Shown here in pieces: positions 8,692 through 32,570 of a DNA stretch of 33,806 nucleotides. Numbering within the stretch: position 1 is the first letter of the stretch; each line of letters starts with the position of its first letter. The stretch spans positions 12,338,001 to 12,371,806 of the forward strand of contig NC_086109.1 of NCBI RefSeq assembly GCF_963921235.1, written 5' to 3'. Origin of the DNA: Mobula hypostoma. Lineage: Eukaryota. Position numbers and translations under genes: made by a program. Below the pieces are notes generated by a model. It was not told the origin of the DNA and searched no databases. It saw only the letters and a program-made list of their open reading frames with translations.

Positions 8692-8738
8692 CTGGGTTTC
8701 ATTGTTGCCTTCTCCGCGAGATGTGTTGTGCTTGGATT
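8692..8738 (-). pseudogene. Candidate cytoplasmic exon of receptor pseudogene 1
   Basis: gtattttccag acceptor, CAG|gtacgg donor, 47 nt reading (E/K)SKHNTSRGEGNNETQ; same strand, downstream of the Ig exons. Confidence 0.45.
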
Positions 8739-8799
8739 CTGGAAAATACACAATTACTGCTAAAAATTCCACGGCCATTACAGACATAAATATTTATGA

Positions 8800-9042
8800 T
8801 GGTATTAAAGAGCTGTAGTCAATAAAAAGGAGCCTTATGTATGCGTCTTTATTCTCCAGGTGTTCTAAGGAGGAATGTAGAGCCAGAGAGATGGCATCTG
8901 CCATTGACCTGTTGCTCCGGTAGGCGGATTGCAAAGTGTCAAGGTTGACTGGTAGGCTGTGGTTGATGTATGCCATAACCAATCTCTTGAAGCACTTCAT
9001 AGCAATTGATGTCAGAGCCACAGGTCGATAGTCATTCAGGCA
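8800..9042 (-). mobile_element. Rex1/Babar LINE RT fragment
   Basis: ORF 8794-9021: [14 protein letters not shown]...QSAYRSNRS...DAISLALH...LFIDYSS. Confidence 0.85.
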
Positions 9043-9043
9043 A

Positions 9044-9067
9044 CTATCTATCTATCTATCTATCTAT
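9044..9067 (+). repeat. (CTAT)6 microsatellite
   Basis: Six exact tandem CTAT units. Confidence 0.95.
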
Positions 9068-9069
9068 CA

Positions 9070-9215
9070 TTCAAAGACAAAGTCAAAGTAAATAATTATT
9101 ATCGAGTACGTACATGTCACCACATCCTACCATGAGATTCTTTTTCTACCAGTATACTTAGCAAATTTATAGAACAGTAACTGTGAACAGGATCAATGGC
9201 CAAGAAACTATGCAA
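9070..9215 (-). mobile_element. Rex/Babar-type LINE 3' UTR fragment
   Basis: Similar to the starts of 25875-26165 and 31580-31845. Confidence 0.5.
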
Positions 9216-9239
9216 AGTTTGACTTCGAGTTTGACTTTA

Positions 9240-10045
9240 TTGTCCCCAAACTTGGCCACAAAGCCATCAATACTGTCATCCAAATCATTGAGATAAAATA
9301 TGAAAAGAAGCGGTCCTAACACAGACCACTACAGAACAGCACATGTCACTCTTAGGAAACAGAAGGCACCCTCTATTCACAGTCTTTGCCTCCTGCCAGT
9401 CAGCAAATCTTCTATCCACGCTAGAATTTTTCCAGTGATACAAAGGCTTCTTATCTTGTTTAGCAGCCTCATGTGTGGCACCATGTCAAAGGCCTTCTAA
9501 AAATCCAAGTCAACAATATCCACTGACTCGCCTTTGTTGATTCTGCTGGTAATTTCCTTAAAGAATTCCATCCGATTTTTCAAGCAATATTTGCCCATAA
9601 GGGAACCATATTTTGTCATGTGCCTTCAAGTATGAAATCTCCTGCTGTTTTGTCTATCTGGTCCTGGTGACTTATCTAACTTCCAAGCTCCTTCTCTACA
9701 GTAACAAATGCACTCACTTCTGATAATGCCTACTTTGTGTCATACTGCTTGTGTCTTCCTCAGTGAAAAAACTTTGCAAAATATTTATTGAGTGTGTCCT
9801 CTATTTCCTCGTCTGTCATTATTACTATCTCTCTAGCGTCGTTATCCAGTAATCTGATATCCATTGTTGCTTCGCTTTTACTCTTCATATGTCTGAAAAT
9901 ATTTTGGTCACGTCTTTTATATTATTGGCTTGTTTCCCTTTATATTTCATCTTTTCTCTCCTTATCGCTTTTCATGTAGCCTTCTGTTGGCTTTTAAAAG
10001 CTTCCCAATTCGCTGACTTCTCACTAAGTTTTACCATATATAGGA
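9240..10045 (-). mobile_element. Degraded, internally deleted CR1 fragment
   Basis: Contains rc of KAFDMVPH-, HGFLMG- and DKSPGPD-type segments; similar to 18430-19400. Confidence 0.8.
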
Positions 10046-10217
10046 CCTTCCTTTCACTTTTATGACAGTGTCACTGTCTCACAACTCAACACTTATTCTA
10101 GCATATTCAATACAGAAACCAGATGTATGAATGGAATGCTCTCAACTTGTCTGGATGTACAAGTCCGACAATTTTTGAGATGCTCAGCATCTTCCTGGAG
10201 GAGGTGACAGACTTAAC

Positions 10218-10266
10218 CATTCACTGCACTTTCTTTCTACCCCATGGAGGCTGCAATGTGTAGCTT
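10218..10266 (-). pseudogene. Candidate post-C2 stalk exon of receptor pseudogene 1
   Basis: Acceptor ttctttgcatttgtag; start AAGCTACACATTGC resembles start AATCTAGACATACCTGT of the gene 2 exon at 32570; donor uncertain. Confidence 0.4.
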
Positions 10267-10366
10267 CTACAAATGCAAAGAAATTCCTTACCCTCACTAT
10301 ACAGCAGCAGTAACAGAGTAACAAAAAAAAACATTTAAATGATCCTCCCTTAAAATTAGAACTTGC

Positions 10367-10651
10367 TGGTGCTATTGATTTCCGTCTCATATCTGCAGAT
10401 CTCTCTGTTGTTGAAGATTGCCACATTAACCGTTCTGTTGTGTTTTTCTCCAAGCCTATTTGAGACACTGCAGTGATTTGTGGGGGCTGGATGTCTAAGG
10501 ATTGACAGTGCAAAGCCAGTTCATTAGTATCTGAGATGTTCAGATGCTCGGATGAGGCTTGTTCATACCAAGTGTACCGAATGGGAAGAGATCTCTGGAG
10601 AGAGTTATAGGACACTGACACCGAGCCCTCGAGATGGGAGACATTTGCTGG
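10367..10651 (-). pseudogene. Ig C2-type exon (3' part) of receptor pseudogene 1
   Basis: PANVSHLEGSVSVSYNSLQRSLPIRYTWYEQ...LHCQS, frameshift near 10478, then HCSVSNRLGEKHNRTVNVAIFNNREICRYETEINST; expected first Cys is Tyr; donor is GCAAGT. Confidence 0.88.
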
Positions 10652-11285
10652 TGAAACCATTTGGTTTCCTCAGCTGTGTAAGTCTAGGAAAGACAATCTC
10701 CGGTCCAGCCAAACTCGTGACATTGAGGTAGGCTTGATCCCTCCCAAACCTCAGTTTGTGTGGATGTTGTGTCATTTGCTACCCTGTTACAAAGCAACAA
10801 AGTAACAGACAGTATATTGCATACGATTAAAGGAATTATAGTTATGAATCTTTACTGAAGTGTTAGGAAAGAATAACAAAAAGAAAGTCCCATTCCAATT
10901 AACCAGTCGAATGTGCACACATTGGAGCTCATCTTGAACTTCTCTGTCACTCATGCACTGAGCCCTCGGTCACGTGAAAGCACACACCACCTTCCGAACA
11001 TCGCTTGCAATCCATCTCGAACAAACAGGCCTCCCACCAGATTGTATGCTACGACCGGTTCTCCCCAACATCTTCTCTCTTCATCTCCTCTTGAACAAAA
11101 GCCCCAAGACCAACCTTTTGTCCCACATCAAAAAAACCTCCTGCTAATTGGATGGCACACACTCCACATCATCCCTTATCTTCAACAATAATCCAAACAG
11201 GCTGAAAGCAGAACAGCAGCTCTTATAGAGCTGCCAAATGAAATACGTACAGCAAAGCAGTAAAGATGTGAACCAGGGCATTACA
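10652..11285 (-). mobile_element. Solo LTR (634 bp) inserted in the C2 exon
   Basis: TG...CA termini (TGTAATG...GGTTTCA on minus); 4-bp TSD CCAG (11286-11289, 10648-10651); TATA-like CTATAAGAG near 11225. Confidence 0.85.
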
Positions 11286-11304
11286 CTGGTGACAGACACA
11301 GGTT
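11286..11304 (-). pseudogene. Ig C2-type exon (5' part) of receptor pseudogene 1
   Basis: Acceptor ttcctccccacag; joins phase 1 to the V exon giving QVFN-E-PVSV. Confidence 0.75.
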
Positions 11305-11361
11305 CTGTGGGGAGGAATTCAATTTTCAGACACTGAATGAACATTTGAAAATTAAACTCTG

Positions 11362-11907
11362 ATCTGCCACTTTATTAGGTACTCCTATTCATCTGTTCAT
11401 TAATTAAAATATTTAATTAGTCAATCATGTGGCTGCAACACAGTCGACATAAGCAGACAGATATAATCAAAAGATTCGGTTGTTGTTTAGGCAATCAGAA
11501 TAGAGAGGAAGTGTGATCTTAGTGACTTTGATTGTGGAATGATAGTTGATGCCAGACAGGGAGGCATGAGTACCCAAGAAACTGTTGATATTGTGGGATT
11601 TGCACATACAACAGTCTCTAGAGTTTGCAGAGAGTACTGCCTAAAACAAACAAGAGTCCAGTGAGCAGGAATTTTGTGAGAAAAATGGCTTGTTAATGAG
11701 AGAAGTCAGAGGGATATGGCCAGACTAATTCAGGCTGACAGAATGATGGCAAGAATTCAAATAACCACACGTTATGACAGTGCTGAAGAACATCTAAACA
11801 CACAATACATCGAAGCTTAAAGTGAGTGGGTCACAGCAGCAGAAGACCATGAAGATACAGTGGTCACTTTATTAGGCGTAGGAGGTACCTAATAAAGTTT
11901 TCAGTGG
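11362..11907 (+). mobile_element. Tc1 family A internal-deletion derivative
   Basis: Inverted ends CACTTTATTAGGTAC / TACCTAATAAAGT; decayed transposase N-terminus (CDLSDFD...GMIV). Confidence 0.8.
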
Positions 11908-12227
11908 CTTTGAGAGGAAAATGAAATTGTGACTAGGTTTAGTGTCCTGCCACAGACAGGGAAACACTTGACACTGATATTAATGCAGAGATACTGAGGG
12001 ATGGACAGGGTCTGGACAAAAATCTGGTACTCTATCCTGAGGCTGAGCAGGAGGAGGAAGAGATTGCTGTTCTTCAGACACATCCATGAGATGGACATCT
12101 ATCCATTCAGCAAGCTTAACCCTGGGATCAGCACATCGTCACTCCCCAGGACATCTAATGACCCTTCCCAGAGGAAACATGGATGAGACATTTAGTTCAT
12201 TGAAAAATTATTCACTAAGAAACCTAC

Positions 12228-12548
12228 CATTAAATACTTGTGGATGTACATTAAATATTGGATCATGACCTGTTGTTGAAATCCCATATCTATACCATCC
12301 TGTATCTCCAGAGTGAAGATCCTCCATGGTAACAGAAAATATTCCCCATTCTGGGTTATCTGTGACTAACACTCATCCACTCCATCCATGTTGCCCATTT
12401 GTTTCCACTATAGTTGCACAATGGTAAGTCCATCCATGGCACCAATACTTTGTGTGGAAGCGGTACTTTGCTTCATAGTTGCAATCAGTTGTGGTCACTC
12501 TTCCCACAACTCCTCTTACATATTTCTCTGCCCACAATGCACCTGAAA
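12228..12548 (-). pseudogene. Ig V-type exon of CD300/pIgR-like (MDIR-like) receptor pseudogene 1
   Basis: cttcctcag acceptor, G|gtaggt donor, phase 1-1; SGALWAEKYVRGVVGRVTTTDCNYEAKYRFHTKYWCHGWTYHCATIVETNGQHGWSG*VLVTDNPEWGIFSVTMEDLHSGDTGWYRYGISTTGHDPIFNVHPQVFN; stop at 12373-12375; F-strand Cys replaced by Tyr. Confidence 0.93.
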
Positions 12549-12800: not shown

Positions 12801-12844
12801 TACCCTGTCTCATACCTCTCCCTCTCTCCTAATTACCCTATCTC

Positions 12845-12950
12845 CCTCTGATGCAAAGCCTTGACCCAAACCATTGATGTTTCCACTCCCCCTTACAGAT
12901 GTTGCTTGACCCACTGAGTTCCTCTAGAGTGTACTCTGAACTCCAGTTTT
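12845..12950 (+). mobile_element. Old PLE-terminus-derived short repeat
   Basis: CTGATGC...TTGACCCAAA...CAGATGTTGCTTGACCCACTGAGTTCCTC resembles 14164-14262. Confidence 0.55.
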
Positions 12951-13055
12951 CGATATCTTTCGTGTCTACAAGTATTCAAGCTCTGTTCTGGAAATGGTGT
13001 ACGATCCCCAAACCAATACTGATTATGCAAATGTCCAGCGCAAGTTGTCACTCAC

Positions 13056-13091
13056 TGGGCAGGAAACCACTAGAATCGAAGTCCACAGCAT
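13056..13091 (-). pseudogene. Signal-peptide exon of receptor pseudogene 1
   Basis: ATGCTGTGGACTTCGATTCTAGTGGTTTCCTGCCCA|gtgagt; 36 nt, one short of the 3n+1 needed; restoring one base gives MLWTSILxGFLP-ISGALWA. Confidence 0.75.
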
Positions 13092-13154: not shown

Positions 13155-13210
13155 ATGAGGAACAAGGCAGCAGGAGGTTTGATCAGAAAACCAAAGTGAC
13201 CAACTGTGGT
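13155..13210. promoter_or_regulatory. Candidate promoter motifs (PU.1/ETS-like, IRF-like, RUNX)
   Basis: GAGGAA 13157-62, GAAAACCAAAGTGA 13186-99 and TGTGGT 13205-10, 65-120 bp upstream of the leader ATG; motif match only. Confidence 0.3.
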
Positions 13211-13557
13211 ATGTGACAATCGAAACATTTTCAGTTATATTAGTAAGACAGAAACAATTAAATAATTCTCAACGACTGAACAAGATGGTGAGCAGAGTTG
13301 AGATATTGGACACAAGTAACAGCGTATGTTCTAATCTGAAGCAATGGTAAATGGTAATCTGAAATGTTGACTACTCTGCCTCCACAGATTCCACCGGATT
13401 CCTTCAGATCTTTTATTTTTTGCTTGATTAAAATGTTATCTGTGGTGTGTCACTGGGGAAAGTGTTCATGGTGAAAAGTTAATTGTGGAAAGGGAACAAG
13501 CTCATGTTGAGTTTTGTGAGTATGAGTAGAAAGTTACGTCACCCATAATCCAGCCCA

Positions 13558-13940
13558 CAGGAGCATTCGATGGCTCTGGGTCTGTTCCCACTGGAGATTA
13601 GAAGAATGGGGAGGGGGTCTCATTGAATATTGAAAGGCCTATATAGAGTGAATGTGGAGAGGATGTTTCCTGTAGTAAGGAAGTCTACAACTAGATGACA
13701 CAGCCTCAGAGTACAAGGCCATTCCTTTAGAACAGAGACGAGGAAGAATTTCTTCAGGCATATGGTGATGAATCTGTGAATCCACTTCAACAGATGGCAG
13801 TTCAGGCCAAGTCATTGGATATATTTGAAATGGAGGTTGATAGGTTCTTGATTATTGAAGGTGTCAAAAGTTATGGGAGAAGGCAGGTGAATGGGGTGGA
13901 GAGGGCCTAATTTTGCACCTATGCCTTTGGTCTTTTGGTC
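13558..13940 (+). mobile_element. CR1 3' fragment
   Basis: LGLFPLE-RR-G-LIE-like RT end and 3' UTR with TGGTC tail. Confidence 0.8.
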
Positions 13941-13947
13941 CTCTAAT

Positions 13948-14128
13948 ACAGGCACCAATTTGATGAATCTCTTCTGCAACATGAATTCTTGAATGTTCAA
14001 TGCTCATCCAATGACAGAAGCCCTCTTTACCACCTACTTTACCATCCCCCTCTGTTCCAAATCTCAGGGAGTTATGGACTTGCACCCCAAGATCCGTACA
14101 TCGTTCTGGACCTGCCTTGGTGACAATT
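13948..14128 (-). mobile_element. CR1 RT fragment
   Basis: rc resembles RDLGVQVH...VKRASV...GIE region. Confidence 0.6.
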
Positions 14129-14163
14129 CAAACAAACAAGAGACACAAGAAAGACATGACATG

Positions 14164-14262
14164 AGACCTGATGAATGGTCTTGGCCTGAAAGGTCGACTG
14201 TTTACTGTTTTCCATACATGCTGCCTGACCTGCTGAGTTCCTCCAGGTTTTTGCGTGTGTTG
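14164..14262 (+). mobile_element. PLE-terminus short repeat with degenerate hammerhead
   Basis: AGAC CTGATGA ATGGTCTTGGCCT GAAA GGTC GACT followed by ATGCTGCCTGACCTGCTGAGTTCCTCCAG...GTGTGTTG. Confidence 0.85.
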
Positions 14263-14589
14263 TGATCATTCTATCAAACCTGTTTTTGGGAACTTGCTGC
14301 TGAGGAAGGAGTAAAGTGGGAAATAGGTTTGATGTAGAAGGGGCTTTTCATGCAAACTCAGCAGACATACTTGGCTTCATTCCCTCTCCTCTCTGAAGGC
14401 TGATTCCACCATACGAAGCAATTTTTAAAGCTCACTTCTTCTGAATTCTATTCCATCTGTAGGTGCAATTTCAGGAGCTCTGATGGGATTTCACTTTGCT
14501 TCAGTTAGATGTGAGGGGAAACCAACTGAATGGAATTGCACATTCACAAAGGTAAAATCCACATCAGATCTGTTCTTAAACCAGATCAA

Positions 14590-15717
14590 GCAACACACAT
14601 CAAAGTTGCTGGTGAACGCAGCAGGCCAGGCAGCATCTCTAGGAAGAGGTACAGTCGACGTTTCAGGTCGAGATCCTTCGTCAGGACTAACTGAAGGAAG
14701 AGTTAGTAACAGATTTGAAAGTGGGAGGGGGAGGGGGAGATCCAAAATGATAGGAAAAGACAGGAGGGGGAGGGATGGAGCCAAGAGCTGGACAGGTGAT
14801 TGGCAAAGGGGATATGAGAGGATCGTGGGACAGGAGGCCCGGGGAGAAAGACAAGGGGGGGGGGAACCCAGAGGATGGGCAAGGGGTATAGTCAGAGGGA
14901 CAGAAGGAGAAAAAGGAGAGTGAGAGAAAGAATGTGTGTATAAAAATAAATAATGGATGGGGTACGAGGGGGAGGTGGGGCATTAGCAGAAGTTAGAGAA
15001 GTCAATGTTCATGCCATCAGGTTGGAGGCTACCCAGACGGAATATAAGGTGTTGTTCCTGCAACCTGAGTGTGGCTTCATCTTTACAGTAGAGGAGGCCG
15101 TGGATAGAATGTCAGAATGGGAATGGGATGTGGAAATAAAATGTGTGGCCACTGGGAGATCCTGCTTTCTCTGGTGGATAGAACGTGGGTGTTCAGCGCT
15201 CCCAGTCTGCGTCGGGTCTCTCCAATATATAGAAGGCCACATCGGGAGCACCGGACGCAGTATATCACCCCAGCCGACTCACAGGTGAAGTGTCGCCTCA
15301 TCTGGAAGGACTGTCTGGGGCCCTGAATGGTGGTAAGGGAGGAAGTATAAGGACATGTGTAGCATTTATTCCGCTTACAAGGATAAGTGCCAGGAGGAAG
15401 ATCAGTGGGGAGGGATGGGGGGTATGAACGGACAAGGGAGTCGCATAGGGAGCAATCCCTGTGGAAAGCAGGGGGGGGGAGGGAAAGGTGTGCTTAGTGG
15501 TGGGATCCCGTTGGAGGTGGCGGAAGTTGCGGAGAATAATATGTTGGACCCGGAGGCTGGTGGGGTGGTAGGTGAGGACCAGGGGAACCCTATTTCTAGT
15601 GGGGTGGCGGGAGGATGGAGTGAGAGCAGATGTGCGTGAAATGGGGGAGATGCGTTTGAGAGCAGAGTTGATGGTGGAGGAAGGGAAGCCCCTTTCTTTA
15701 AAAAAACAGATTTTTCA
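14590..15717 (-). mobile_element. Neptune-type Penelope-like element, 5'-truncated (linker, GIY-YIG endonuclease, 3' terminus)
   Basis: PCKRNKCYTCP Cys linker and HFTCESAGVIYCVRCSRCGLLYIGETRRRLG; 14-bp TSD TTAAACCAGATCAA (14576-14589, 15718-15731). Confidence 0.93.
14653..14688 (-). ncRNA. Minimal type I hammerhead ribozyme motif
   Basis: AGTC-CTGACGA-AGG(ATCTCGA)CCT-GAAAC-GTC-GACT: intact core, 4-bp stem I, 3-bp stem II, palindromic loopless stem III (ACGT). Confidence 0.8.
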
Positions 15718-16172
15718 TTAAACCAGATCAACACCATTTTGACAGGAAATGGTCTGTGTGAATAAACAACCCCTGTTGTTTCTATTTCCCATAGAATCAT
15801 AGGGCACAGTAAATGTATAGGTCATACTTGTCCAAGGAGAAGACATTTCTATCTTACCTATCTCACCCCAATGGTCTCCTTGACACCAGACCCTGTATAC
15901 CTTTGCTCATCTTCACCATTGCTAGTTTCCCAATATACCTGTGATGATGGTTAGATCTTCCAATGTTACTCAAAGTGTGATCTATCCAAATTCATACTGT
16001 GCGATTCCCTGGGGCAGATGAAGTCTGAGGAGAGCTTCAGTACAAGGCAGTACAACAGTTCTCACATGTCACACATATTGGAGAAGTAATGCAGAATCAG
16101 AATCAAAATCAGGTTTCATATCACCAACATAGTGTACATCATGAAATTAACTGTAGTGGTCCAAATTGTTCA

Positions 16173-16237
16173 CTATCTATTCTTTTCCATAGATGCTGCC
16201 TGACCTGCTGTGCTCCTCCAGCATTTTGTGTGTGTTG
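16173..16237 (+). mobile_element. PLE-terminus short repeat (3'-most part only)
   Basis: CATAGATGCTGCCTGACCTGCTGTGCTCCTCCAGCATTTTGTGTGTGTTG. Confidence 0.8.
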
Positions 16238-17204
16238 TTTCATTGTTCAATCATGATTTCATTGGAATGTGAGGGTTGAGGTGACCCAAGAATGTAGCTC
16301 ATTTATATTTTCCTGATTTTTTTGTTGCTGACTTTGCAATGGTTTATAAACACTTAATTTCACATTGTATATAAATAGACAAATGATAAAATAATTCATG
16401 ATACACGGACAGCCTTTGTTACTTTGGGTTTGTTACATTTGTTTTAGGGGAAAACAGTGCAGCGTACTATCCATGAATGTTATCTGCTTTAATGTTGTAC
16501 GTTGTGTAATATGAGTGCTAAATCCATTGCATCAACCACTCCCGTCATCTGTGTAATGTTCACCCTCAGCAACGGATGTGGTTAGAACCCCTGTCTTCTT
16601 TACTTGTCTTACCAAACAGAATATTGAGAAGTGCCAATGGATGCTACAAATAGTCAAATGTGGTCTCTTCCTGCATGGCCCTATCACTTTTTGGAAAACT
16701 TCTCAACAACCATGGTTCAATACGCTGATGTGAGCAAGTGCAGAGATACAAAACATCTTTGTGTCTTCTGGTCTTCTGGTCTATGGTGTTAAGAGATGGA
16801 GCAATGCAGGAAGAGGATGGAACAATTTGTTTGCATGAGCCATCCATTGGTCCTTCCCTAAATTCTGTTTTGTAAGTAAAGATACACAAGTTACAACCAT
16901 ATCCTTTTGGAATTGCTTTTGGATGTCCTCGGAAAGGGAAAGGGTCCCGTTCAGAGTCAGAATCAGATGTGAAGTTTGTTGTTTTGCAGCATAAATAAAG
17001 AAAGCAAGTTTCTTCCCTCGCACAATTAATTATCTCAGGTATAACAGGTCCTGATTCACAAGTGGGACCACAGCATCTGGAATTATCTCCAGCTATCCAC
17101 ACACATCAGGTAACCCTGACCCGAAGAACTCATGAGCTCTAAACAGACTCTGGTGTTATTGCTTCACATCCCCACATAGCAGGTGAAGGATATCATGTCA
17201 TATT

Positions 17205-19570
17205 CCATAAGACCGTAGATATAGGAACAGAATTAGGCCACTTGGCCCATCAAAACTGCTCCACCATTTCATCATGGTTGATCTAAATTTTCTCTCAGCC
17301 CCAATCTCCTACCTTTTCCCAGTATTTTTTCATGCCCTGATCGATCAAGAATCTATCAATCCTTGTCTTAAATACAGATAAAGGCTTGGACTCCACAGCT
17401 GCCTGTGGCAAAGAGTTCCACAGATTAACCGCCCTCTGTTGAAAGAAATCCTTCCTTGTCTATGTTCTGAAAGGACACCCCTACCCCTTATTCTTAGGTT
17501 GAGTCCACTGGTCTTTAATTCTTCTACCATAGGAAACATCTTCTCTACCTCTACTCTGTCAAGGCTTTACACCTTTCGATAGTTTTCAATTAGGTCATCC
17601 CTTATTCTTTTGAATTCTAATGAATACAGACCCAGAGCCAACAGACACTCTTCATATGAGAAGTCAATCAATCCTGTAAACATTTATGTGAACCTCCTTT
17701 GAACCCTCTCCAGCTGAGCACATCCTTTCTAAGATAAGGTGCCCAGACCTGCTCACAATACTCCAAGTAAGGCCTCACCAGCACTTTATAAAGTTTCAAC
17801 ATTACACCTTGTGTTTATATTCCAGTATTCTTGAAATGAAAATTAACATTGCATTTGCCTTTCTCACCAGAGACTCAAGCTGCAAATTAACCTTTGGGGA
17901 ATCCCACACAAGGACTCCCATGTTCCTTTGTGTCTCAGATATTTGTATTTATTCTCCATTTAGAAAATGGTCAACACTTTCATTTCTTCTACCAAAGTGC
18001 ATGACCATAAACTTCCCTACACTGTATTCCATCTGCCATTTCTTCAAACATTCTCCTAATCTGTTTAATTCCTTCTGTAGCCTCTCTACTTTCTCAAAAC
18101 TACCTGACCCTCCACCTATCTTCATATCGTCTGCAATCTTTGCAACAAAGACATCAATTCCATCATCCAAATCATTGACATACAAGGTAAAAAGAATTCA
18201 TCCCAACACAGACCCCTGTGTAACACCATTAACCATTGGCAGCCAACCAGAAAAGACTCCCTTTATCAACACACACAAAATGCTGGAGGAACTCAGCAGG
18301 CCAGGCAGCATCTATGGCAAAAAGCATAGTCAACATTTCGGGCCAAAACTCTTTTGCAGGACTGGAGAAAAAAGCTGAGGAGTACTCAGCTACTCATCTA
18401 CACATTATCTCTTGTTTGTGATATTAAGACTCCCTTTATTCCCACTCTTTGTGTCCTGTCAGTCTGCCACTGCTTTATCCATGCTAGAATCTTCCCTGGA
18501 ATACCATTGGCTCATAGCTTGTTAATCAGTCTCATGTGTGGCACCTTGTCAAAGGCCTTCTGAAAATCCACATACACAACACCAACTTTGTCTATCCTGC
18601 TTGTTATTTCTTCAAAGAATTCCAACAAATTTTTCAGGCAAGATATTCCCTTAAGGAAACCATGCTGACTATGGACTATTTTATCATGTGCCTCCAAGTA
18701 TTCTGAAACCACATCTTTAACAATCAACTCCAACGTCGTTCCAACCATTGAGGTCAGACTAACTGGCCTATAATTTCCTTTCTTCTGTCTCTCTCTCTTT
18801 TTGAAGAGTGGGGTGACATTTGAAACTTTCCATTCCTTCAGAACCATTCCTGAAGCAATTGATTCTTGAAAGATCACTACTTATGCCTCCACAATTTCTT
18901 CAGACGCCTCTTTCAGAACCTCATGTTATACCATCTGGTCCAGGTGATTTATTTACTTTCAGACCTTTCAGTTTCCCAAGAACTTTCTGCATAGTAATGG
19001 CAACTTCACACTCTTCTGCCCTCTGACCCACCTGAATTTCCAGCATACTGCAAATGTCTTTCACAGCAAAGACTGATGCAAAATACTTGTTCAGTTTATC
19101 CTCCATTTCCTTGTCACCCATTATATCTCTTCAGCATCATTTTCCAGCAGTCCAATATCCACTCTTGCCTCTCTTTTACACTTAATGTATCTGTAGAAAC
19201 TTTTGGTGTCCTCTTTAATGTTGTTGGCTATTCTACTTTTGTATTCCATCTTTATCTTCTTAATGACTTTTTTAGTTGTCTTCTGTTAATTTTTAAAAGC
19301 TTCGCCATCTTCTAAGTTCCCACTAATCTTTCCTCTATTATATGCCCTCTCTTTGGCTTTTATGTTGGCTTTGACTTCTCTTGTTCATGGTTGTGCATCT
19401 TTCATTTAGAATACTTCTTCCTCTTTGGTATGTAAATGTCTTGTGCCTTCTGAATTGCTTCCAGAAATTTCACCCATTGCTACTCTACTGCCATCCCTGC
19501 AGTGTTCTTTTCCAATCAATTCAGGCCAACTCCCCTCGCATGTCCGTATTTACCTTCACTACACTGTAAT
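17205..19570 (-). mobile_element. CR1 LINE fragment with nested PLE insertion
   Basis: ORFs 17949-18185, 18512-18877 and 18921-19121 (NYRPVSLTS, DFQKAFDKVPH, NKSPGPDG); CCATAAGACC tail at 17205. Confidence 0.93.
18267..18425 (-). mobile_element. PLE-terminus insertion with fold-back and filler
   Basis: 14-bp TSD AAGACTCCCTTTAT (18253-18266, 18426-18439); degenerate hammerhead 18328-18363. Confidence 0.88.
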
Positions 19571-19579
19571 ACAGATAGA

Positions 19580-20045
19580 ACGTTTGTGTCACCAGAAGAT
19601 TCACCCTGAGATTCATTTTCTTGCAGGCATTCATAGTAGTGCAAATGAATACAATAGCATCAATTAAAAACTACATACAGATATGTACAAACAACATGCA
19701 AAGGAAGACAAACTATGGAAATACAATGAATAAATAAGGATATAATATGGAGGAGATGAGATGTAGAATCTTTGAAAGTGATTCCATAGGCTGTGTTCAG
19801 TGATAATATCAGTGTTGAGGTGACTGAAGTTATCCTCCCTGGTTCAGGAGCCTGGTGGCTGCCCTGTTCCTGAACCTGTTAGTTCGGGAACTGAGCTCCA
19901 GTACCTCCTTCTGCTCGGCAGCAGCGAGAAGAGAGCATGTCTGGATGATGTGGGTCCTCGATGATGGATTCTGCTCTCTTGTGGCAGGTCTCCTTTGTAG
20001 ATGTGCTCACTGGTGGTCTAGGCTTTACCTATCAACTGATCAGGT
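19580..20045 (-). mobile_element. Rex/Babar-type LINE 3' fragment
   Basis: Shares the ACCCTGAGATTCATTTTCTTG...GAAGTTATCC segment with 25875-26165 and 31580-31845. Confidence 0.7.
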
Positions 20046-20680: not shown

Positions 20681-20683
20681 CAT

Positions 20684-21256: not shown

Positions 21257-21496
21257 TGTTATGGTTTGTAGCTCCAAAACAGTAAAATACTTCAAAGGAA
21301 AGCCGAGAAATGTAAATCTTAGTTTCTGTTTTTACTTTAAGTGAGGTGCGCATGTATCATGTGTTGGTGTCATGATATATGCAATTCAAGTCTTTTACTT
21401 ATAATCTGTATTTAATTATTTAAACAAACAAGAGTACTTAATCAAACAATATGTACAATATTATTCAAATATTACTAAAATATTAAATACACAACA
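21257..21496 (-). mobile_element. Gypsy 3' LTR (240 bp)
   Basis: TGTTGTG...CCATAACA on minus, directly preceded by the polypurine tract. Confidence 0.75.
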
Positions 21497-21825
21497 CTCC
21501 TCCCTGCTTAGCGGTAAATTGCAACTCAATATGGTATGTATCTCAACCATATACAAAGTATGATATATCATGCAACTACTATTTGCAGATATCCATGGCA
21601 TAGTAAATTTTAATTTGTCCCATTCAGACCTAAAGAATTAATCGCTGTGAAGGATTTCCTGCTCTTATGGGACAACATTTTTTCTGACAAATCGGATTAC
21701 TCTGCCTGGCAGTTAAAACTTTTGGCTGTGAAATCTCAGGTTCCAGGGCCTCCTCTGTGGTGGTTACAGGAACTGACTCTAAACCTGCAGGAAGTGGTTC
21801 TGACAGCTCTGAACATTTTTCTTCT
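21497..21825 (-). mobile_element. Gypsy integrase C-terminal tail, 3' UTR and polypurine tract
   Basis: EEKCSELSEPLPAGLESVPVTTTEEALEPEISQP...PIRAGNPSQRLIL* (RxPxRL-type end); PPT TAAGCAGGGAGGAG at 21497-21510. Confidence 0.75.
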
Positions 21826-22366
21826 CCTTCCTTTTTCTTCTTTTAGTTTATGCATCTTGATGCTGGGAAGGTGCAATGAGTTCACTGAAGTATTCTCTTT
21901 TGAATCCCTCTATTTCTCCCATTACAATCTGATCTGTCCTTTTGGTTTTCTCATCCACATCATCATTTGGTGGATCCCCTGCTTTCGACTCTCCATTGAC
22001 TCCTTTCCATTTGACCTTCCATTAATCCAGCTGGGCGTCTATTTTTACAAGCAGCTTTTAGTCTCTTACTTGAAGTTCATGCAATAAACATAATGCACGC
22101 AGAGTAGATTCTTTGTATTCACAAAAGCCGAATGCTTGCAACTTTCTTGAAACTTCTTGAACTCTCTCCTAGCTTAAAACCAAGCCATATTTCACAGATA
22201 ACTGTCTGACTAACATGCCAGGAACTTTCACTGATATGTTGCCCACAAAAACCGTTGTAGTCAGACCAGTGCTTTCGTCACTTTCACACTTCTATTGAAA
22301 AGCATGGTCCTTCCTTGTTCCAATATGCTTTCCAACCAGAAGTACAGAGGTTGGCACCAACACTGG
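21820..22366 (-). pseudogene. RBM25: Intronless RBM25 fragment (RRM region) embedded in the Gypsy element
   Basis: One continuous frame with five stops: PVLVPTSVLLVGKHIGTRKDH...TTTVFVGNISVKVPGMLVRQLSVKYGLVLS*ERVQEVSRKLQAFGFCEYKESTLRALCLLHELQVRD*KLLVKIDAQLD*WK...REYFSELIAPSQ...KRKEKK; collinear with vertebrate RBM25 as recalled. Confidence 0.93.
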
Positions 22367-22407
22367 TTAGTTCTCTGTTAGGCAATGGTTCATGTTTTTC
22401 TGCATGG

Positions 22408-22679
22408 AGACAGTTGTGGCATCGTCCAGTACCTTTTTTAAATTTGTTTTCAGTTGGCTTCTTTGCAGGGGTTATGACATGCAAATTATTGAACGGATTT
22501 CCAACCAAGTAGTAGTTGTCAATGTGGCTTGTTGTTGTTGTTGTATTTCACAGTTACAAATGTCATTCCCACAGGAATTGCCTTTTCTCCTGGATAGGTT
22601 CTTAGTTGAATATCTGCAGGCTTCAGCTTGGAATCTTTGAAATGTTGCTCAAACTTATTTTGTGGAATGACTGAAACAG
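22408..22679 (-). mobile_element. Gypsy protease to pre-RT region
   Basis: SVIPQNKFEQHFKDSKLKPADIQLRTYPGEKAIPVGMTFVTVKY...LGWKSV...VLDDATTV; truncated just after the expected DTG motif. Confidence 0.8.
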
Positions 22680-23195
22680 GTGAATGATTTAAACCTTCTC
22701 CTGTGTTTATGGTCTTATGGTCCTGACTCCCTCAAGAAAATCCAGGAGCCCGAATGTGATCTGTTTGCCATGTATAAAGTTTTATTCTCATCTAAGCCTA
22801 AAGGATAAATGACTTATTAACACCAGCAGTTTATAAGCAAGTATCTTAACTGATAGCTTATTAATCATTGGAATATCTAACAGCAACGACCTCTGGCATT
22901 TAAATCCATAGAAGAGAGTTTAATAGAGTAAAATGGTCTTAAGCAGTTCACAGCTGTGACAGGGCTAAAAATAGTTGCTGTGGCAAAAAATAAAAGGTGC
23001 CACAATATTGAGATCAGTGGGGGTGACATGTTGGAAATGGAATGCTTAAAAATAATGTCTTGAAGTACGGTAACATTATTTTTTCACCTTCATGAAGTTA
23101 ATAATTTAATGACAAGAGAGGTTAATTTTTTCATAAATTGGGAAGAATATTTTATCTTGGTGCAAAATTCGAGCAGTCAGAAGCCTTCACTTTAC

Positions 23196-23234
23196 CTAAG
23201 GGACCAGGTTGTGAGGATCTGATACATTGCCACT
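23196..23234 (-). CDS. Candidate terminal cytoplasmic exon of receptor gene 2
   Basis: attgccttttgcag acceptor; SGNVSDPHNLVP* in phase 0 after the TM exon; TAG directly followed by gtaaag. Confidence 0.5.
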   Translation of the reverse strand, partial: SGNVSDPHNLVP

Positions 23235-23489
23235 CTGCAAAAGGCAATGGTCAAATCTTCAGACCCATCGACACTGGGAACTCTGCTATGCAGTTGTACC
23301 TGGAGCTTGGACTCCAATATATGTACATCAAACATTCTGCACACATACAGTGTGTCAACATCTTGTCAATATCATCTGCAAATATCTTTGTATTGATCAT
23401 TGGATAAGAAAAGGTCAATGTGTTTAAATGTCTTTCCTCAAATGATCAGTATATTTGAAAGCAAATTCCACTGATGTCCAGAAGCCTAC

Positions 23490-23580
23490 CTCAGTTTTCC
23501 TTGTGAACCATGTGACTGAAATCATGCAGATCATCAGCAGAGTGAAGAGCAGCCAACGGTCCACCTTCCATATTATGAAA
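23490..23580 (-). CDS. Transmembrane exon of receptor gene 2
   Basis: Strong acceptor tctcttcccctttactcag, GAG|gtaggc donor; FIIWKVDRWLLFTLLMICMISVTWFTRKTE, no stop. Confidence 0.8.
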
Positions 23581-25350: not shown

Positions 25351-25367
25351 AAGGTAGGCTTTATATA

Positions 25368-25768
25368 CAGTGCTGTGCAAAAGTCTTCTGCACATGTAAA
25401 ATAATTCTGTATAGTGAAGATGCTTTCAAAAACAATGAAATGAAATGTTTCTGAATAACAAGGAGCAAGAAACAATAGTAAAATTAAATGAAATCAATAT
25501 TTGGTGTGACCATCTTTTGCCTTTAAATCTTCATCAGTTCCTCTAGGGATCTTGTCATGCAATTCTATAAGAAAATCAGCTGGTGGGTTGTTCGAAGAAT
25601 ATTGGAGAACTTGCCACAGTTCGTCTGCAGACTTTGACTGTCTCACTTGTTTCTGCCTCTCCAGGTAATCCCAGACAGCCTCAATGATGTCGAGATCAGT
25701 ACTCTCTGGAGCCCATACCATCTGAAACAATAAAAATCTAGGGGGCATAAGATATTTGCACAGTACTG
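25368..25768 (-). mobile_element. Tc1 family B internal-deletion derivative
   Basis: TA TSD both sides; TIRs CAGTGCTGTGCAAA / TTTGCACAGTACTG; WAPESTDLDIIEAVWDYLE...GHTKY transposase C-terminus. Confidence 0.9.
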
Positions 25769-25874
25769 TAGATGGATGTGCAATGGAAAGCCACATGGTC
25801 TTTGTCTGTGCTATACGTCTCTGGGACTGTATGAATCTGTTACACAACAGGATGTGAACCCTGATTCTTATCAT

Positions 25875-27160: not shown

Positions 27161-28140
27161 ATGTTTAATGAGAAGGCTCAAGGAAATGTGAAGAAAATTA
27201 ACCTGTTTGGGCTAACAGCAACTCTGGCAAGTAAGATAGGGGAAATAGTATTTGCAGAAGTCCTTAATGATGGCAACCTATTGGTAAAATGTGCGAATGA
27301 GGATCAACTTGAGAAAGTACTCAAGCTAAAAGAGATAGGAAAATGCAAGGTGGAATACTCAAGGAGGGTGAGGGCACGAAATAGCAGTGTATGTAAAGGA
27401 GTGATCACGGGGGTACCAATAAGTATAAATATGGAGGAGTTAAAGAGAAATATCAAAGGAGGAAAAGTAATAAATGTTCAAAGATTGCAAACAAGAAAGG
27501 AAAGAATGAAAAAAGAAGGTGAAACAGTATCGATTGAATTTGAAGAAGAAAGAGTGCCAAGGAAGGTGTTCCTGGGTTTCATGAGTTACCCAGTAAGGGT
27601 GTATGTGCCAAAGCCATTGAGGTGCTATAATTGTCAAAGGTTTGGACACAAGCTAAAAACTGTAAAAGGCAGAGGAGATGTGCTAGATGTGGGGGTGATC
27701 ATGAATATGGAAAGTGCGGAACAGGAGTGCAACTAAAATGCTGCAATTGTGGAGGAGCTCATAATGTTGCATATAGTGGGTGTGAGGTTATGAGACGGGA
27801 GAATAAAATTCCAGAAATAAGAGTGAAAAGAAAGATCACTTATGCAGAAGCTGTAAGAATATCAAAAGAACAGAATAATGCTTCTAATGAACAGGGAGCA
27901 ATAGGGATGCAAGAGTTGCAACAAAGAACACATGACAGGATTTATGTAGACAAAAAGGCTCTAGTCACATTCATTGCAGGAGTGATTAATAGTACAGCTG
28001 AGGTAAAGTCAGAAAGTGATAAAATTCAGCTGGTGGTCAAAGCAGCAATGAACCATTTAGGGTTAATAGGACTGACATGGGAGGAAGTGAGGGAGAACCT
28101 CACTAATCAGTCAAGCCAGAAAGTGTCATGGGTTGGTTAA
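27161..28140 (+). pseudogene. Nimb ORF1 (one frameshift near 27650)
   Basis: CYNCQRFGH...C, CARCGGDH...C, CCNCGGAH...C. Confidence 0.88.
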
Positions 28141-28148
28141 TACTAATT

Positions 28149-29795
28149 ATGGTGATTCTTTTACAATGGAATGCAAGGAGCTTACTGGCCAATAGCCAGG
28201 AATTCAAGCACTTCATTAAAGAAATGGTTGTAAAACCAGATGTAGTATGTATTCAGGAAACTTGGTTGAAACCAACTTTAGACTTTGTGGTATATGGGTA
28301 TACAATGATAAGGAAAGAGAGAATTCTAGGGGGAGGAGGGGGTTGTGCAATGTTAATCAAACAAGGTATACCATATAGGATATTGGAAAAAGGAGATGAT
28401 CAGGAATACATAGTGGTGGGAGTGTGGGAAAGAGGGGAGGGAATGGTTATAATTAACTACTACAATCCATGTAAAATGTTGGATATGGACAGCCTATTAA
28501 GGATACAAAGACAAAACAGACATAAACTAGTGTGGTGTGCAGATTTCAATGCTCATAGCACAATATGGGGGATACGATTACAGATTCAAATGGAAAGGTA
28601 ATTGAAGATTTGATGGAAGAAAGGGATTTGGTGTGCATGAATGATGGTAGAGGAACAAGGATAAACTTAACAACAGGAACTGAGTCAGTATTAGATATTA
28701 CGTTGGTGTCTAATACGTTGGCTGGTGTTAGTAACTGGGGGGTTTGGACTGCTTCAGCAGTAGGCAATGATCACTACCCAGTTTTATGTTCAGTGGGTGA
28801 AATAATTGAAGTAAGACCAGGTGGTGGAATCCCAAAGTGGGTTGTCAAGCTGTAAAAAACAGAAATAGAGCATTCAGGCTAGTTAAAAGAACCCATAATA
28901 TGCAGCATTTGATTCAGTATAAGAAGGCACAGGCAGTGGTGAAAATAACTATACGTCAAGCTAAAAGGGCAAGTTGGAGGAGTTTTTGCAACAAAATAGG
29001 AAGAACAACACCTCTGGGAGAGGTATGGGGAATGATTAAGAGGATGGGGGGGGGAATATCCAGTAATGATATCGGAGGAGGAAACAGCAGTCTCCAGTAG
29101 GGATAAGGCTGAGATCATGGCCAAGTCGTTTGTACAGATACACGGTTCAGAAAATTTGTCTGAAGAAGGGAGAAGGAGAAGGGAAAGAACAATGGATCAA
29201 CACCTAGGTGTGTTAACAGGAGGGAAGAAACAGATGATCCATTTACGCTGGCAGAAATGGTGAGAGCAATAAAGACATCAAGACCAACCTCCCCAGGGAA
29301 AGATCTGATATGCTATGTTATACTGAAAAATCTAGGAGAAGGAGCACTCTTGAAGTTGCTGCATTTTTATAACAGAGTGTGGAAGGAGGACAGATTACCA
29401 AGTGCATGGAAAGAAGCAGTAGTAATTCCAATTAGGAAACCTGGCAAGGATCCGTCAAAACCCACTAGCTACAGATCAATAGCATTAACATCAAATATAT
29501 GTAAGATAATGGAAAGGATGATAACAGAAAGGTTATCGTATGCGGTTGAGAAGAGAGGAATGCTGGCAAGTTACCAGAGTGGTTTTAGGAAGGGAAGGAA
29601 TTCCATGGACTCAGTGATAAGGTTAGAGACTGAAATAAGAAAGGCCCAGGCAAATAAAGAGTCAGTAGTTGCAGTGTTTTTTGACATTGAAAAAGTCCAT
29701 GATATGATGTGGAAGGAAGGATTGTCAATTAAACTGCACAAGATGGGGGTTGTGGGAGAGTTTTTAATTGGATTAAAGACTTTTTGTTTGGTAGA
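28149..29795 (+). pseudogene. Nimb ORF2 remnant (APE, deleted linker, partial RT)
   Basis: ORFs 28128-28601, 28565-28855, 28837-29100, 29066-29263, 29257-29841. Confidence 0.88.
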
Positions 29796-30110
29796 CATGT
29801 CATTATCATCAAAACAGTCCCAATGTTTTCTGAACTTTTAACCAAGGATGTTTTTTTGCAGACATTGAGGAAGGTGGATTAAGTAAACAGTGTTTTTCGA
29901 TATCCTCTGGGTATTCCAGTTGGATGTTTTCCCTAAACGACGCCTGATGGTACTGTTGGGTGGCAGTGTCAACCAGGTGCTCAAGTCTTAGCCATGGACT
30001 GGTCTGCTTCTTGTGAACCCTCCTCTTTTTCATGAGCCTGATGGATGTGGTGCTATGGATTAGCTGATATCCGTCTCGCAGTCATCTATGTCTATCATGG
30101 CACTTGCGAT
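29796..30110 (-). mobile_element. Old RTE fragment (EN-RT linker)
   Basis: Frameshifted KKRR...PEDIEKHC...KFRKHWDCFDDND, collinear with 5930-6215 of the large RTE (KKHQDWFDDN). Confidence 0.7.
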
Positions 30111-30114
30111 AAAT

Positions 30115-30588
30115 GATTGCAGGATTGAATGGCTTAACATATGAAGAGTGTTTGATAGCTCTGAGCCTGTATTCACCAGAATTCAGAAGAAGGAGGGGTG
30201 ACCTCATTGAAACATATTGAATGTGAAAGGCCTCAATAGAGTGGATGTGGAGAGGAGGTTTCCTATGGTGGGAGGGTGTAAAACCAGAGGACACAGCCTC
30301 AGAACAGAGGGGCATCCTTTTAGAATGGAGATGAGGAGCAATTTCGTTAGCCAGAGAGTGGTGGATCTGCGGAATTCTTTGCGACATGCATCTGTGGAGG
30401 CCTAGTCTTTATGTATATTTAAGACAGAGGTTGATAGTTTCTTGATTGGTCAGGGCATGAAGGGATTCAGGGAGAAGGCAGGAAAAAGGGGCTGAGAGGA
30501 AAATTGGAGTAGCCATGATGAAATGGTGGAGCAACTCAATGGGCCAAAATGGCCTAAGTCTGCTCCTATATCTTAAGGTCTTATGGTT
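30115..30588 (+). mobile_element. CR1 3' fragment
   Basis: KGLNRVDVERRFP...TRGHSLR...SQRVVDL; TCTTATGG tail. Confidence 0.9.
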
Positions 30589-30934
30589 GTATGATAGACA
30601 TGACACTGCATTCCCTAGCTTGGACAATGACAGCATCAATGTGGTGACTCTGTTTGGATTGGGTATGCTGCCCAGATGCCGTGAATTTGTTTATCTGGTG
30701 CAACAGAGTATTTATGATTATAAGATTGTGCTCAGCACATGTGGGGAGTCATATTCTATTTGATTTTATTCAGTACCCAGCCTTACTTCCTACTGATCAT
30801 TGTCCTTAAGACCTTTGTACAATGAGAGTCCTTGTGCTCAAAGTGAATAACTTATTATAGTATTCTCTGTGTATTGCTATTCCTTAATATATCAGGAAAA
30901 CACACGCCTGTCTGAAATACAATTTGCAGATGAT

Positions 30935-31080
30935 AGAAATATTCAGTAGGTCGGGCAGCAACTACAAGGGAAATAACAAAGTTAATACTTCAGGTCAGCC
31001 TTTTTCAATAAAATCATTCTGATGGGATGTCATGATCTGAAGATTATTTGATTCTTTCTCCGAAGAGTTTCTAACTACTG
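30935..31080. mobile_element. Highly degraded inverted pair of PLE-terminus repeats
   Basis: GAAATATTCAGTAGGTCGGGCAGCA arm followed by opposite-orientation CTGATG...CTGAAG arm. Confidence 0.4.
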
Positions 31081-31579
31081 ACACCTTAAGGAAAATCTAG
31101 GACCCTGAATTCATGAGAGAAGTTTTATTCTGAACAATGCGAATGGATACATAGTTCATTGAAAATGGAACATTATGAAGAAGCATTTCTATTTATATAT
31201 TCATAGTTAATTACTCAAATAGACAACAGTAAAGCCAGTAATTTGAATCTGTAGAACAGATTTCAACATAGTAAAAAGATTTTGAGCAGTTCGTGATCAT
31301 GCAAAGAATAAAATTGATGCTGGAGTGATGCAGGAAATCTTGAGAAGATGTCACAATATTAAGATCAGCATGGGTGAACAGTTGCAGGTAGAATTCTATT
31401 AAATAAAGCCACTATCTTGAAGTGTGACAAGATTATTTTGTTTGATTTCACCTTCTAAGTCAATGTTGTAATAACAAGCAACATTAATTTTGTATTACAT
31501 CTCCACAAAGTAGGATAAATAATGAATAATGAAATGCTGAGGAGGTTTGACCCAAAATCGAGCAGTGGACCTACTTCTG

Positions 31580-31845
31580 ACAAAGTAAATTGAAAGTAAA
31601 TTTATTCTCAATGTACATCCTATACAACACTGAGATTCACTTTCTGTGGGCATTCTCAATAAATGTATAGAATAATGAAAATAACAAAATCAATATAAGT
31701 CTGCCAAACTTGGGAGTTCATCCAGAGTGCAGAAGACAGCAAACTGTGCAAATACAAAAAGAAAGAAATAATAATAAGTGAAAAAAAACAAACAATATTG
31801 AGAACATGAGATGGAGTCCTTGAAAATGAGAATGATGGCTGTGGA
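31580..31845 (-). mobile_element. Rex/Babar-type LINE 3' UTR fragment
   Basis: Similar to 25875-26165. Confidence 0.7.
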
Positions 31846-31854
31846 AAAAAGCCA

Positions 31855-32187
31855 AATAAAAAAGGTGCTGGCTATTCAATCTACTTATGTTTCCTACCAT
31901 TATTAACACCTTTCTCAAGTCACCAAGAGAAAAACCCGAGCTCACTCAACCTATCCTCATAAAACATGTTGTCGATACAGGGCATCATCCTGGTAAGTCT
32001 CTTCTAAAGCTACTGCATGCTTTCTATATTGAGGTGACTAGAACTGAACACAATACTCCAAGTGTGGACTAACCAGAGTTTTTCGAGCTGAAACGTTACC
32101 TCAAGGCTCTTGAATTCAATCCCCCGCCGAATGAAAGCCAACACACAACGTGCTTTGTTAGCCACCCTATCGACTTGCATGGCAAGT
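31855..32187 (-). mobile_element. CR1 RT fragment
   Basis: QVDRVANKARCVLAFIRRGIEFKS...LVHTWSIVFS. Confidence 0.85.
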
Positions 32188-32484
32188 TCCTGTTCATGTC
32201 TAGGCAAAGGTCTTTTAGTAGACCAAGACAAGACAGGGAGATAAACAAAATCTCGGGTGACATCTACTATTGGACTGTCTGAGCCGATTTGTCTTTTTAC
32301 TTTAACGTATCTCCAAGGTAACACCAGCAATTGAAAGTGGGTGCACCCCTTTCTCCCACCCTCTCCACCCTCCACAAGCCACCACCATCAATCACATCAC
32401 AGCAGTTATATTTCATGTGGCAGTAGTGTCAATCAAAACACTGGTATTGAGGACATTGTACCTCTCGATAGAACTGGATCTTAC

Positions 32485-32570
32485 AGTATCATTGAATCTT
32501 ATTTCTGAATTTTCAGAATGTGAAGTCCTTGTTGATTCTGTTGCAGAATTTTCACAGGTATGTCTAGATT
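32485..32570 (-). CDS. Post-C2 stalk exon of receptor gene 2
   Basis: Acceptor ttttaactctttattgctacag, ACT|gtaaga donor; (E)SRHTCENSATESTRTSHSENSEIRFNDT, open, Ser/Thr-rich with one Cys. Confidence 0.65.

Follow-up and report, generated by a model that had tools for sequence, protein, structure and literature searches.

MDIRs (modular domain immune-type receptors), which are related to CD300 and pIgR, have been known from skates since 2006. They are type I membrane receptors composed of CD300/pIgR-type variable (V) domains and C2-type immunoglobulin (Ig) domains, and they occur in paired forms: inhibitory members have an uncharged transmembrane (TM) segment and a tail with immunoreceptor tyrosine-based inhibitory motifs (ITIMs), and activating members have an Arg-bearing TM segment and a short tail. 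The skate MDIRs are cited in one paper as multigene receptors, both activating and inhibitory, that resemble CD300, TREM, FCAR, and pIgR (PMC3031540). Here we analyzed a stretch of 33,806 nucleotides (nt) of retroelement-rich vertebrate DNA from the ray Mobula hypostoma (GCF_963921235.1, contig NC_086109.1, forward-strand positions 12,338,001 to 12,371,806; referred to as the window), in which an inspection of the letters alone (the sequence-only reading) had proposed a hidden tandem cluster of CD300/pIgR-like genes. With a probability of roughly 0.85, the window covers part of a minus-strand MDIR gene cluster of a ray. It most likely contains a decayed inhibitory-type V-C2 copy (gene 1, 13091 to 8692) and, upstream of it, the last three coding exons of a live member of the activating type (gene 2, 32570 to 23196). 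Gene 1 is a pseudogene that would descend from an inhibitory-type member, gene 2 would represent the membrane-proximal part of an activating-type receptor, and the two together may be a snapshot of birth-and-death turnover in a paired-receptor cluster.

The exon map was obtained by tblastn of 245 homologues (P numbers) against the window DNA, and short exons were located by peptide scans scored against the maxima of shuffled peptides. The V, C2, TM, and stalk matches of the tblastn search are colinear on one strand. When the best homologue was used as the query, 119 chondrichthyan proteins were retrieved, including MDIR2, MDIR3, and MDIR5 (UniProt names; here P0227, P0166, and P0173) from the clearnose skate Rostroraja (Raja) eglanteria, with E values from 2e-223 to 1e-89. 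These skate MDIRs align to the V exon of gene 1 with 55–64% identity (E 3e-39 to 5e-30) and to its C2 exon with 46–51% (E 3e-13 to 5e-10). The TM segment of MDIR5 (SWKVGRWLLF...) aligns to the TM exon of gene 2 (E=1e-5), with which it shares the activating motif WKVGRWLLF, and the TM/juxtamembrane region of MDIR3 aligns to the inhibitory-type remnant of gene 1 (...NTSHGEENNEIQ). The CD300/pIgR-type V domain (KYWC...C), the C2-type domain (PIxYxWYE...YYC), and the modular V/C2 order are common to the skate proteins and the ray locus. The homology to named skate MDIRs places the locus in this family, as does the succession of a V exon and a C2 exon on one strand, both in phase 1/1 and corresponding to V-set and Ig_3, Ig_2, or Ig_C17orf99 domains in intact homologues. 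The locus is also part of a multigene family, with two genes arranged head-to-tail within 24 kb, and its V exon is also matched by contigs of paralogues with a similarity of 88% or more. It differs from the skate MDIRs in species and paralogue, in that gene 1 is a pseudogene, and in that gene 2 is visible from the stalk onwards only, with an S/T-rich stalk of the kind found in Hemitrygon P0005 and P0035.

More than 200 annotated proteins from rays and sharks match the locus, and the nearest sequences are automatic NCBI models of rays, namely Mobula hypostoma XP_062921369.1 (‘Fc receptor-like protein 5 isoform X3’), Mobula birostris XP_072133753.1, and Hemitrygon akajei XP_072886327.1 and XP_072886821.1 (‘polymeric immunoglobulin receptor-like’). 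They have the same exon content and order (identities of 74% for V, 68–70% for C2, up to 82% for the gene 2 TM exon, and 70% for the stalk) but are paralogues or distant orthologues, and none is identical to the window. The names given to such models are inconsistent (pIgR-like, FcRL5, CMRF35-like, and CXADR-like). In the Mobula birostris ‘Fc receptor-like protein 5’ model P0152, the N-terminus translates a V exon out of frame and is 84% identical to the same shifted frame of the window's V exon at 12389-12297 (−); the model seems to derive from a paralogue in which the V domain is read in an improper frame. Mammalian CD300/CMRF35 (CLM) and domain 1 of pIgR have the same V type, with an additional disulfide pair and an F strand of the form DxGxYxCG, and CD300 also has the same paired activating/inhibitory logic. 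In contrast to the ray genes, in which V is mixed with C2-type domains and the TM motifs are their own, CD300 has a single V domain without C2 and pIgR has five V-like domains; the identity to the ray genes is ~30–45%. The positions of the exons, lesions, and other features are listed in Table 1.

Table 1 Receptor-gene exons, lesions of gene 1, and long interspersed nuclear elements (LINEs) in the window. A slash marks an exon–intron boundary; ORF, open reading frame.
Feature	Position	Strand	Details
Gene 1 leader exon	13056..13091	−	ATG at 13091; reads ATG...MLWTSILVVSCP; aligns with homologue leaders P0030 and P0034
Gene 1 V exon	12228..12542	−	315 nt; phase 1/1; acceptor tttcag; donor G/gtaggt
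Gene 1 C2-type Ig exon	10367..10683	−	317 nt; acceptor 10685-10684; donor GCAAGT at 10366
Gene 1 TM and juxtamembrane exon remnant, inhibitory type	8692..8793	−	reads IFMSVMAVEFLAVIVYFPESKHNTSRGEGNNETQ/gt
Lesion: in-frame TGA in V exon	12373..12375	−	Arg at this column in 96% of homologue domains; motif GRVSITD
Lesion: TAT (Tyr) for F-strand Cys of V domain	12286..12288	−	WYRYG versus homologue WYSCG; Cys in 99% of homologue domains
Lesion: TAT (Tyr) for B-strand Cys of C2 domain	10607..10609	−	VSVSYNS versus homologue VSVSCES; Cys in 100% of homologue domains
Lesion: 1-nt deletion, frameshift in C2 exon	10475..10478 (~10477)	−	CAA AT CAC TGC versus homologue Q-Y-Y-C
Gene 2 stalk exon	32462..32570	−	109 nt; phase 1 to 2; reads (E)SRHTCENSATESTRTSHSENSEIRFNDTVRSSSIE; acceptor ttgctacag; donor GAG/gtacaa
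Gene 2 TM exon, activating type	23490..23580	−	91 nt; phase 2 to 0; reads (S)FIIWKVDRWLLFTLLMICMISVTWFTRKTE; acceptor ctttactcag; donor GAG/gtaggc
Gene 2 tail exon	23196..23234	−	phase 0; acceptor ccttttgcag; reads SGNVSDPHNLVP, then TAG
LINE endonuclease and reverse-transcriptase ORFs	1723-4424	−	ORF list, domain search
LINE endonuclease and reverse-transcriptase ORFs	5226-8371	+	ORF list, domain search
LINE endonuclease and reverse-transcriptase ORFs	17949-19121	−	ORF list, domain search
Nearly complete, broken LINE: zinc-knuckle, endonuclease, and reverse-transcriptase ORFs	27161-30000	+	Exo_endo_phos 2.8e-12; RVT_1 4e-12

All receptor-gene features of both genes lie on the minus strand. 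Of the nine exons claimed by the sequence-only reading, seven were verified by tblastn or by scans against shuffled peptides. The two remaining ones, a stalk exon of gene 1 and a micro-exon of gene 2, were not confirmed. The outer coordinates of that reading coincide exactly with exon ends: a GT donor directly follows 8692, and an AG acceptor directly precedes 32570. The identification of the genes as CD300/pIgR/MDIR-like is borne out by the matches to pIgR and CD300 structures described below and by the alignment of skate MDIR2, MDIR3, and MDIR5 to the exons.

The V exon of gene 1 reads GALWAEKYVRGVVGRVTTTDCNYEAKYRFHTKYWCHGWTYHCATIVETNGQHGWSG, a stop codon, and VLVTDNPEWGIFSVTMEDLHSGDTGWYRYGISTTGHDPIFNVHPQVFN. 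The V signature was present as described (C-N-Y, the extra Cys pair KYWC-x6-C, and DTGWY), and a six-frame motif scan found it on the minus strand only, with KYWC at 12450-12439 and DTGWY at 12306-12292. Among solved structures, the piece 5′ of the stop matched pIgR (2.7e-10) and CMRF35/CD300 (7e-5), and the piece 3′ of the stop matched pIgR D1 (8.6e-6) and the CD300 protein CLM-1 (1.7e-5); the two pieces occupy colinear domain positions in these structures. A search of 1.84 billion representative proteins with the first piece gave 194 matches, the best of which were from the rays Mobula, Hemitrygon, Narcine, and Rhinoraja. By tblastn, 215 proteins match the exon, with XP_062921369.1 of the same species as the best (E=8e-48). 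Pfam applied to the broken pieces yielded only a weak V-set match (0.04), and no match for the C2 ORF. When the features of such a domain are considered (the B-F disulfide, the C-C′ pair, and DxGxYxCG), the extra pair and DTGWY are present, the F-strand Cys is replaced with Tyr, and a stop is located at a conserved Arg. The V sequence of gene 1 descends from a CD300/pIgR-type V domain and cannot fold as one. Upstream of it, the leader scored 52 against a shuffle maximum of 39, and the alignment of P0004 covers the 5′ untranslated region as well as the leader. The sole consensus donor of the leader, GTGAGT (13055-13050), leaves phase 0, whereas the V exon requires phase 1.

The second Ig exon was recognized only after full-length homologues had been aligned to the DNA. 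The C2 ORF as listed found no match in PDB or in a word-indexed protein search, because it is out of frame after 10478 and a length filter excluded the full-length relatives. With the 1-nt deletion restored, the exon has 318 nt and phase 1/1, the usual phase for Ig exons. It is matched by 114 proteins in tblastn, with 68–70% identity to P0010, P0027, and P0152 (E=9e-27), and corresponds to the domain next after V in the homologues. Since this domain in intact homologues scores above the Pfam cut-off as Ig_3, Ig_2, or Ig_C17orf99, the exon is of the C2 type, and the proposed V plus C2 organization like that of skate MDIRs is upheld. Beyond the frameshift, the true frame reads ‘HCSVSNRLGEK...REICRYETEINST’ (in full, HCSVSNRLGEKHNRTVNVAIFNNREICRYETEINST) with 58–64% identity to the homologues. 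The S/T-rich peptide following ‘...QPPQ’, which had been taken for the stalk of gene 1, is probably an out-of-frame reading of the 3′ half of the C2 exon, because the C2 frame is shifted by the deletion. A separate stalk exon was not found between 10367 and 8806, where scores did not exceed those of shuffled controls.

The membrane-proximal remnant of gene 1 is matched by 17 proteins, including skate MDIR3 and ITIM-bearing ray proteins; the best is Mobula hypostoma P0195 (E=1.3e-4). Its inhibitory-type homologues bear the motifs IVYADL, VYANV, and TYADI. The remnant is short of eight codons, which cover the terminal part of the helix and the basic stop-transfer CYLKRKNR, a TAA is located immediately upstream of it, and a reverse-transcriptase-like transposable element fragment (8794-9021) adjoins its 5′ end.

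In addition to these losses, the Ig exons carry the four lesions listed in Table 1. The TGA in the V exon is most simply read as a CGA to TGA change. The position of the frameshift in the C2 exon is well bounded, as every homologue alignment changes frame between 10478 and 10475. A further TGA at 10672-10670 lies within the C2 exon only if acceptor 10685-10684 is used, and the alternative AG at 10670-10669 skips it. Substitutions were also counted for gene 1, gene 2, and the homologue domains at columns with a conservation of 90% or more. In the V exon of gene 1, 6 of 33 such columns are mismatched; the mean for homologues is 1.18, and a count of 6 is reached in just 2 of 76 homologue domains. 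The corresponding counts are 4 of 23 for the first part of the C2 exon (mean 0.84; 2 of 152 domains reach 4) and 5 of 17 for the second part (mean 0.47; reached by none of 34 domains). Gene 1 does not encode an intact receptor, given its stop, frameshift, and deletion; it is a non-processed pseudogene and cannot make a folded or anchored receptor.

The lesions were checked in public sequencing runs. Three contigs from the same species, whose sample may be the same individual, reproduced both the V and C2 exons with 0 differences, and the lesions are therefore not assembly slips. In contigs of a second ray species that are 98.5–99% alike, the base at 12287 is T, giving a Tyr codon, as judged from depth (9.9 of 99.9 not ‘other’). 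Over 10377-10700, an interval that takes in most of the C2 exon, this species is one letter shorter than the window and hence has no insertion that restores the C2 frame. At 12287, C (a Cys codon) is found in other contigs with a similarity of 88% or more, and the genome therefore contains close paralogues with the Cys intact. For the C2 exon, the only contigs listed are those of the locus itself. In a probable-RNA run, the V exon was covered only by contigs ~89% alike and the C2 exon by none, so that the paralogues may be expressed; an RNA signal specific to the gene 1 locus was not seen in this run.

It is conceivable that gene 1 is still productive, either through skipping of the V exon or an internal start that would give a C2-only or truncated receptor, or because the lesions represent errors or private alleles of this individual. 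Its V and C2 splice sites are still well formed, and in the public P0152 model of Mobula birostris an out-of-frame V exon at the start leads into C2 domains. However, a C2-only product would be encoded by an exon that has lost a Cys and is frameshifted, and the TM exon has no stop-transfer region. The exact reproduction of the lesions in the same species, the Tyr codon and unrestored C2 frame in the second species, the relaxed constraint at conserved columns, and the lack of a locus-specific contig in the probable-RNA run also argue against it, and we consider a productive gene 1 very improbable.

In gene 2, the stalk exon has 70% identity to P0005 and P0035 of Hemitrygon akajei (E=5e-6), and its start in phase 1 is as expected after an Ig exon. 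The sequence-only reading had ended this exon at 32485. There is a donor at this site (ACT/GTAAGA), but it leaves phase 0, and the TM exon would then be read out of frame with a stop inside the exon; moreover, the homology passes 32485 and reaches 32473, and the donor at 32462 fits the phase of the TM exon. Since the stalk exon extends to 32462 in a compatible phase, the micro-exon that had been proposed between stalk and TM is unnecessary. Peptide scans and an evaluation of 350 AG...GT segments with a length of 2 mod 3 yielded nothing homologue-like for such an exon, and a 12-nt piece bounded by AG and GT at 23651-23640 has the wrong phase. The TM exon is matched by 44 proteins (up to 82% identity, E=1e-11), among which skate MDIR5 aligns. 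All of the residues that are invariant in the 44 homologues (W, R, W, L, and L) are present in gene 2, and none of the 10 strongly conserved columns is mismatched. The tail exon scored 46 against P0152 and 39 against P0151 (shuffle maxima of 39 and 35, respectively), and the matching homologue tails read SDPHRLV and SDPHSLV. When joined, the stalk, TM, and tail exons have compatible phases and give 79 open codons up to the TAG, reading ESRHTCENSATESTRTSHSENSEIRFNDTVRSSSIESFIIWKVDRWLLFTLLMICMISVTWFTRKTESGNVSDPHNLVP and a stop. The product would have an Arg in the TM helix and a tail of 12 residues, and by analogy with CD300, TREM, and KIR it would be presumed to signal via an adaptor with an acidic TM residue. 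With regard to the paired forms of the family, gene 2 has the invariant Arg and a short tail, and the gene 1 remnant matches the exon of ITIM-bearing homologues. Homologue tblastn revealed no Ig exon in 32571-33806 or in 13200-23400. The first of these intervals extends to the right end of the window, and the leader and Ig exons of gene 2, if they exist, therefore lie beyond that end. Within the intron of gene 2, a match of P0004 (Rhinoraja) at 31850-31707 (−) to the end of C2 and the start of V (E=0.002) was judged to be spurious or due to chance, because it is of low complexity and would span two exons.

Judging from the open exons, their matching phases, and the retention of all invariant TM residues, gene 2 is most likely the 3′ part of a live member of the activating type, in keeping with the earlier suggestion of a dead copy beside an apparently open one. 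Several points weigh against this assignment. Gene 2 is called open from three short exons only, with its Ig exons outside the window, and a young pseudogene could by chance retain 79 open codons. Of its two donors, the in-frame one at 32462 (GTACAA) is weaker than the out-of-phase one at 32485 (GTAAGA), and the TM exon encodes an Asp at 23561 where the 44 homologues have Gly or Ile. The TM/tail region of gene 2 was not detected in three small probable-RNA runs of the species, and no RNA match was found for gene 1 or gene 2 among the runs listed. In addition, the putative inhibitory type of gene 1 is read from its TM/juxtamembrane remnant; ITIM tail exons were not found in 1-8692, where scores were at or below those of shuffled controls. 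The weak in-phase donor, the Asp, and the lack of an RNA match among the runs listed, together with the empty Ig searches and introns full of retroelements, would fit a less likely reading in which both loci are dead. The three exons of gene 2 would then form an orphaned 3′ fragment or belong to a young pseudogene, and the window would contain relics of birth-and-death turnover and no working gene. Such decay is at odds with three exons that are open in compatible phases behind good acceptors and with a stalk that starts in phase 1. It also contrasts with the absence of mismatches at 10 conserved columns of the gene 2 TM exon, compared with 4–6 per exon in gene 1.

If gene 2 is a live activating MDIR, the two competing donors of its stalk could have a function: splicing from 32462 would produce the membrane receptor with the Arg-bearing TM segment, and splicing from 32485 would produce a secreted form without TM that ends in ...FNDTFHNMEGGPLAALHSADDLHDFSHMVHKEN and a stop. 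We regard this as unlikely. The same out-of-frame reading of the TM exon is found in the public sawfish and stingray models P0029, P0021, and P0151, and that of the inhibitory-type exon in P0181 and P0182. If true, the choice of donor would be a conserved receptor/decoy switch in the MDIR family. In these five ray and sawfish models, the counterparts of the TM exons at 23580-23490 and 8776-8702 are translated in a shifted frame (LHDMECAALG... and GRVIVSSNVVFSRNEAQNFSQKRQQ) and serve as TM-less C-termini or as bridges into the next tandem gene. The models are likely chimeric or mis-spliced predictions, and soluble isoforms generated by alternative donors are possible.

Taking the assignment of a decayed gene 1 and an open gene 2 as the most probable one, the locus is a real and ordinary addition to a known family, with one pseudogene and one partial activating-type gene in a ray. 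It is ordinary because MDIRs have been known since the work on skates and models are annotated in many rays and sharks; no new kind of receptor or mechanism emerges. Its value lies in a direct view of birth-and-death turnover, in which a decayed inhibitory-type copy stands beside an open activating-type copy with introns swollen by retroelements. The exon map may also aid annotation, as pipelines name the family inconsistently and build chimeric models across tandem copies.

The receptor exons lie in a window that consists mostly of retroelement debris. The nearly complete LINE in Table 1, whose ORFs include two CCHC zinc-knuckle motifs (CYNCQRFGH and CCNCGGAH), sits antisense within the 8.9-kb stalk-TM intron of gene 2. 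Very high-copy repeats occupy 10724-11970 (the V-C2 intron) and 12804-13011; their summed contig depth is up to 10^4 in three ray species, and they also occur in the probable-RNA run. In such a setting, the matches might reflect frames that are open by chance or repeat-borne pieces that look like exons, and those to the leader, the tail, and the TM remnant are individually weak. This explanation is already refuted for the main exons, and its overall probability is negligible: the E values reach 8e-48 (V), 9e-27 (C2), and 1e-11 (TM), the exon order is colinear, and the boundaries fall exactly at AG and GT with the Ig-typical phase 1/1. Furthermore, the high-copy stretches are confined to the two intervals given above, and the C2 exon is represented only by contigs of the locus itself.

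Two further groups of repeats were observed. The ORF fragments at 20784-21041 and 25494-25874 (−) are related (DNA similarity of ~74%; repeat families D7, D8, and D12), and their ends resemble the C-terminus of Tc1/mariner transposases (...LKAKDGHTKY), with no Pfam match. Direct repeats of 137 nt at 130-266 and 14590-14726 are 89% alike, with a weaker third copy at 18289-18363. The two 137-nt copies share one short ORF (HTSKLLVNAAGQAAS...) and probably represent an element resembling a short interspersed nuclear element.

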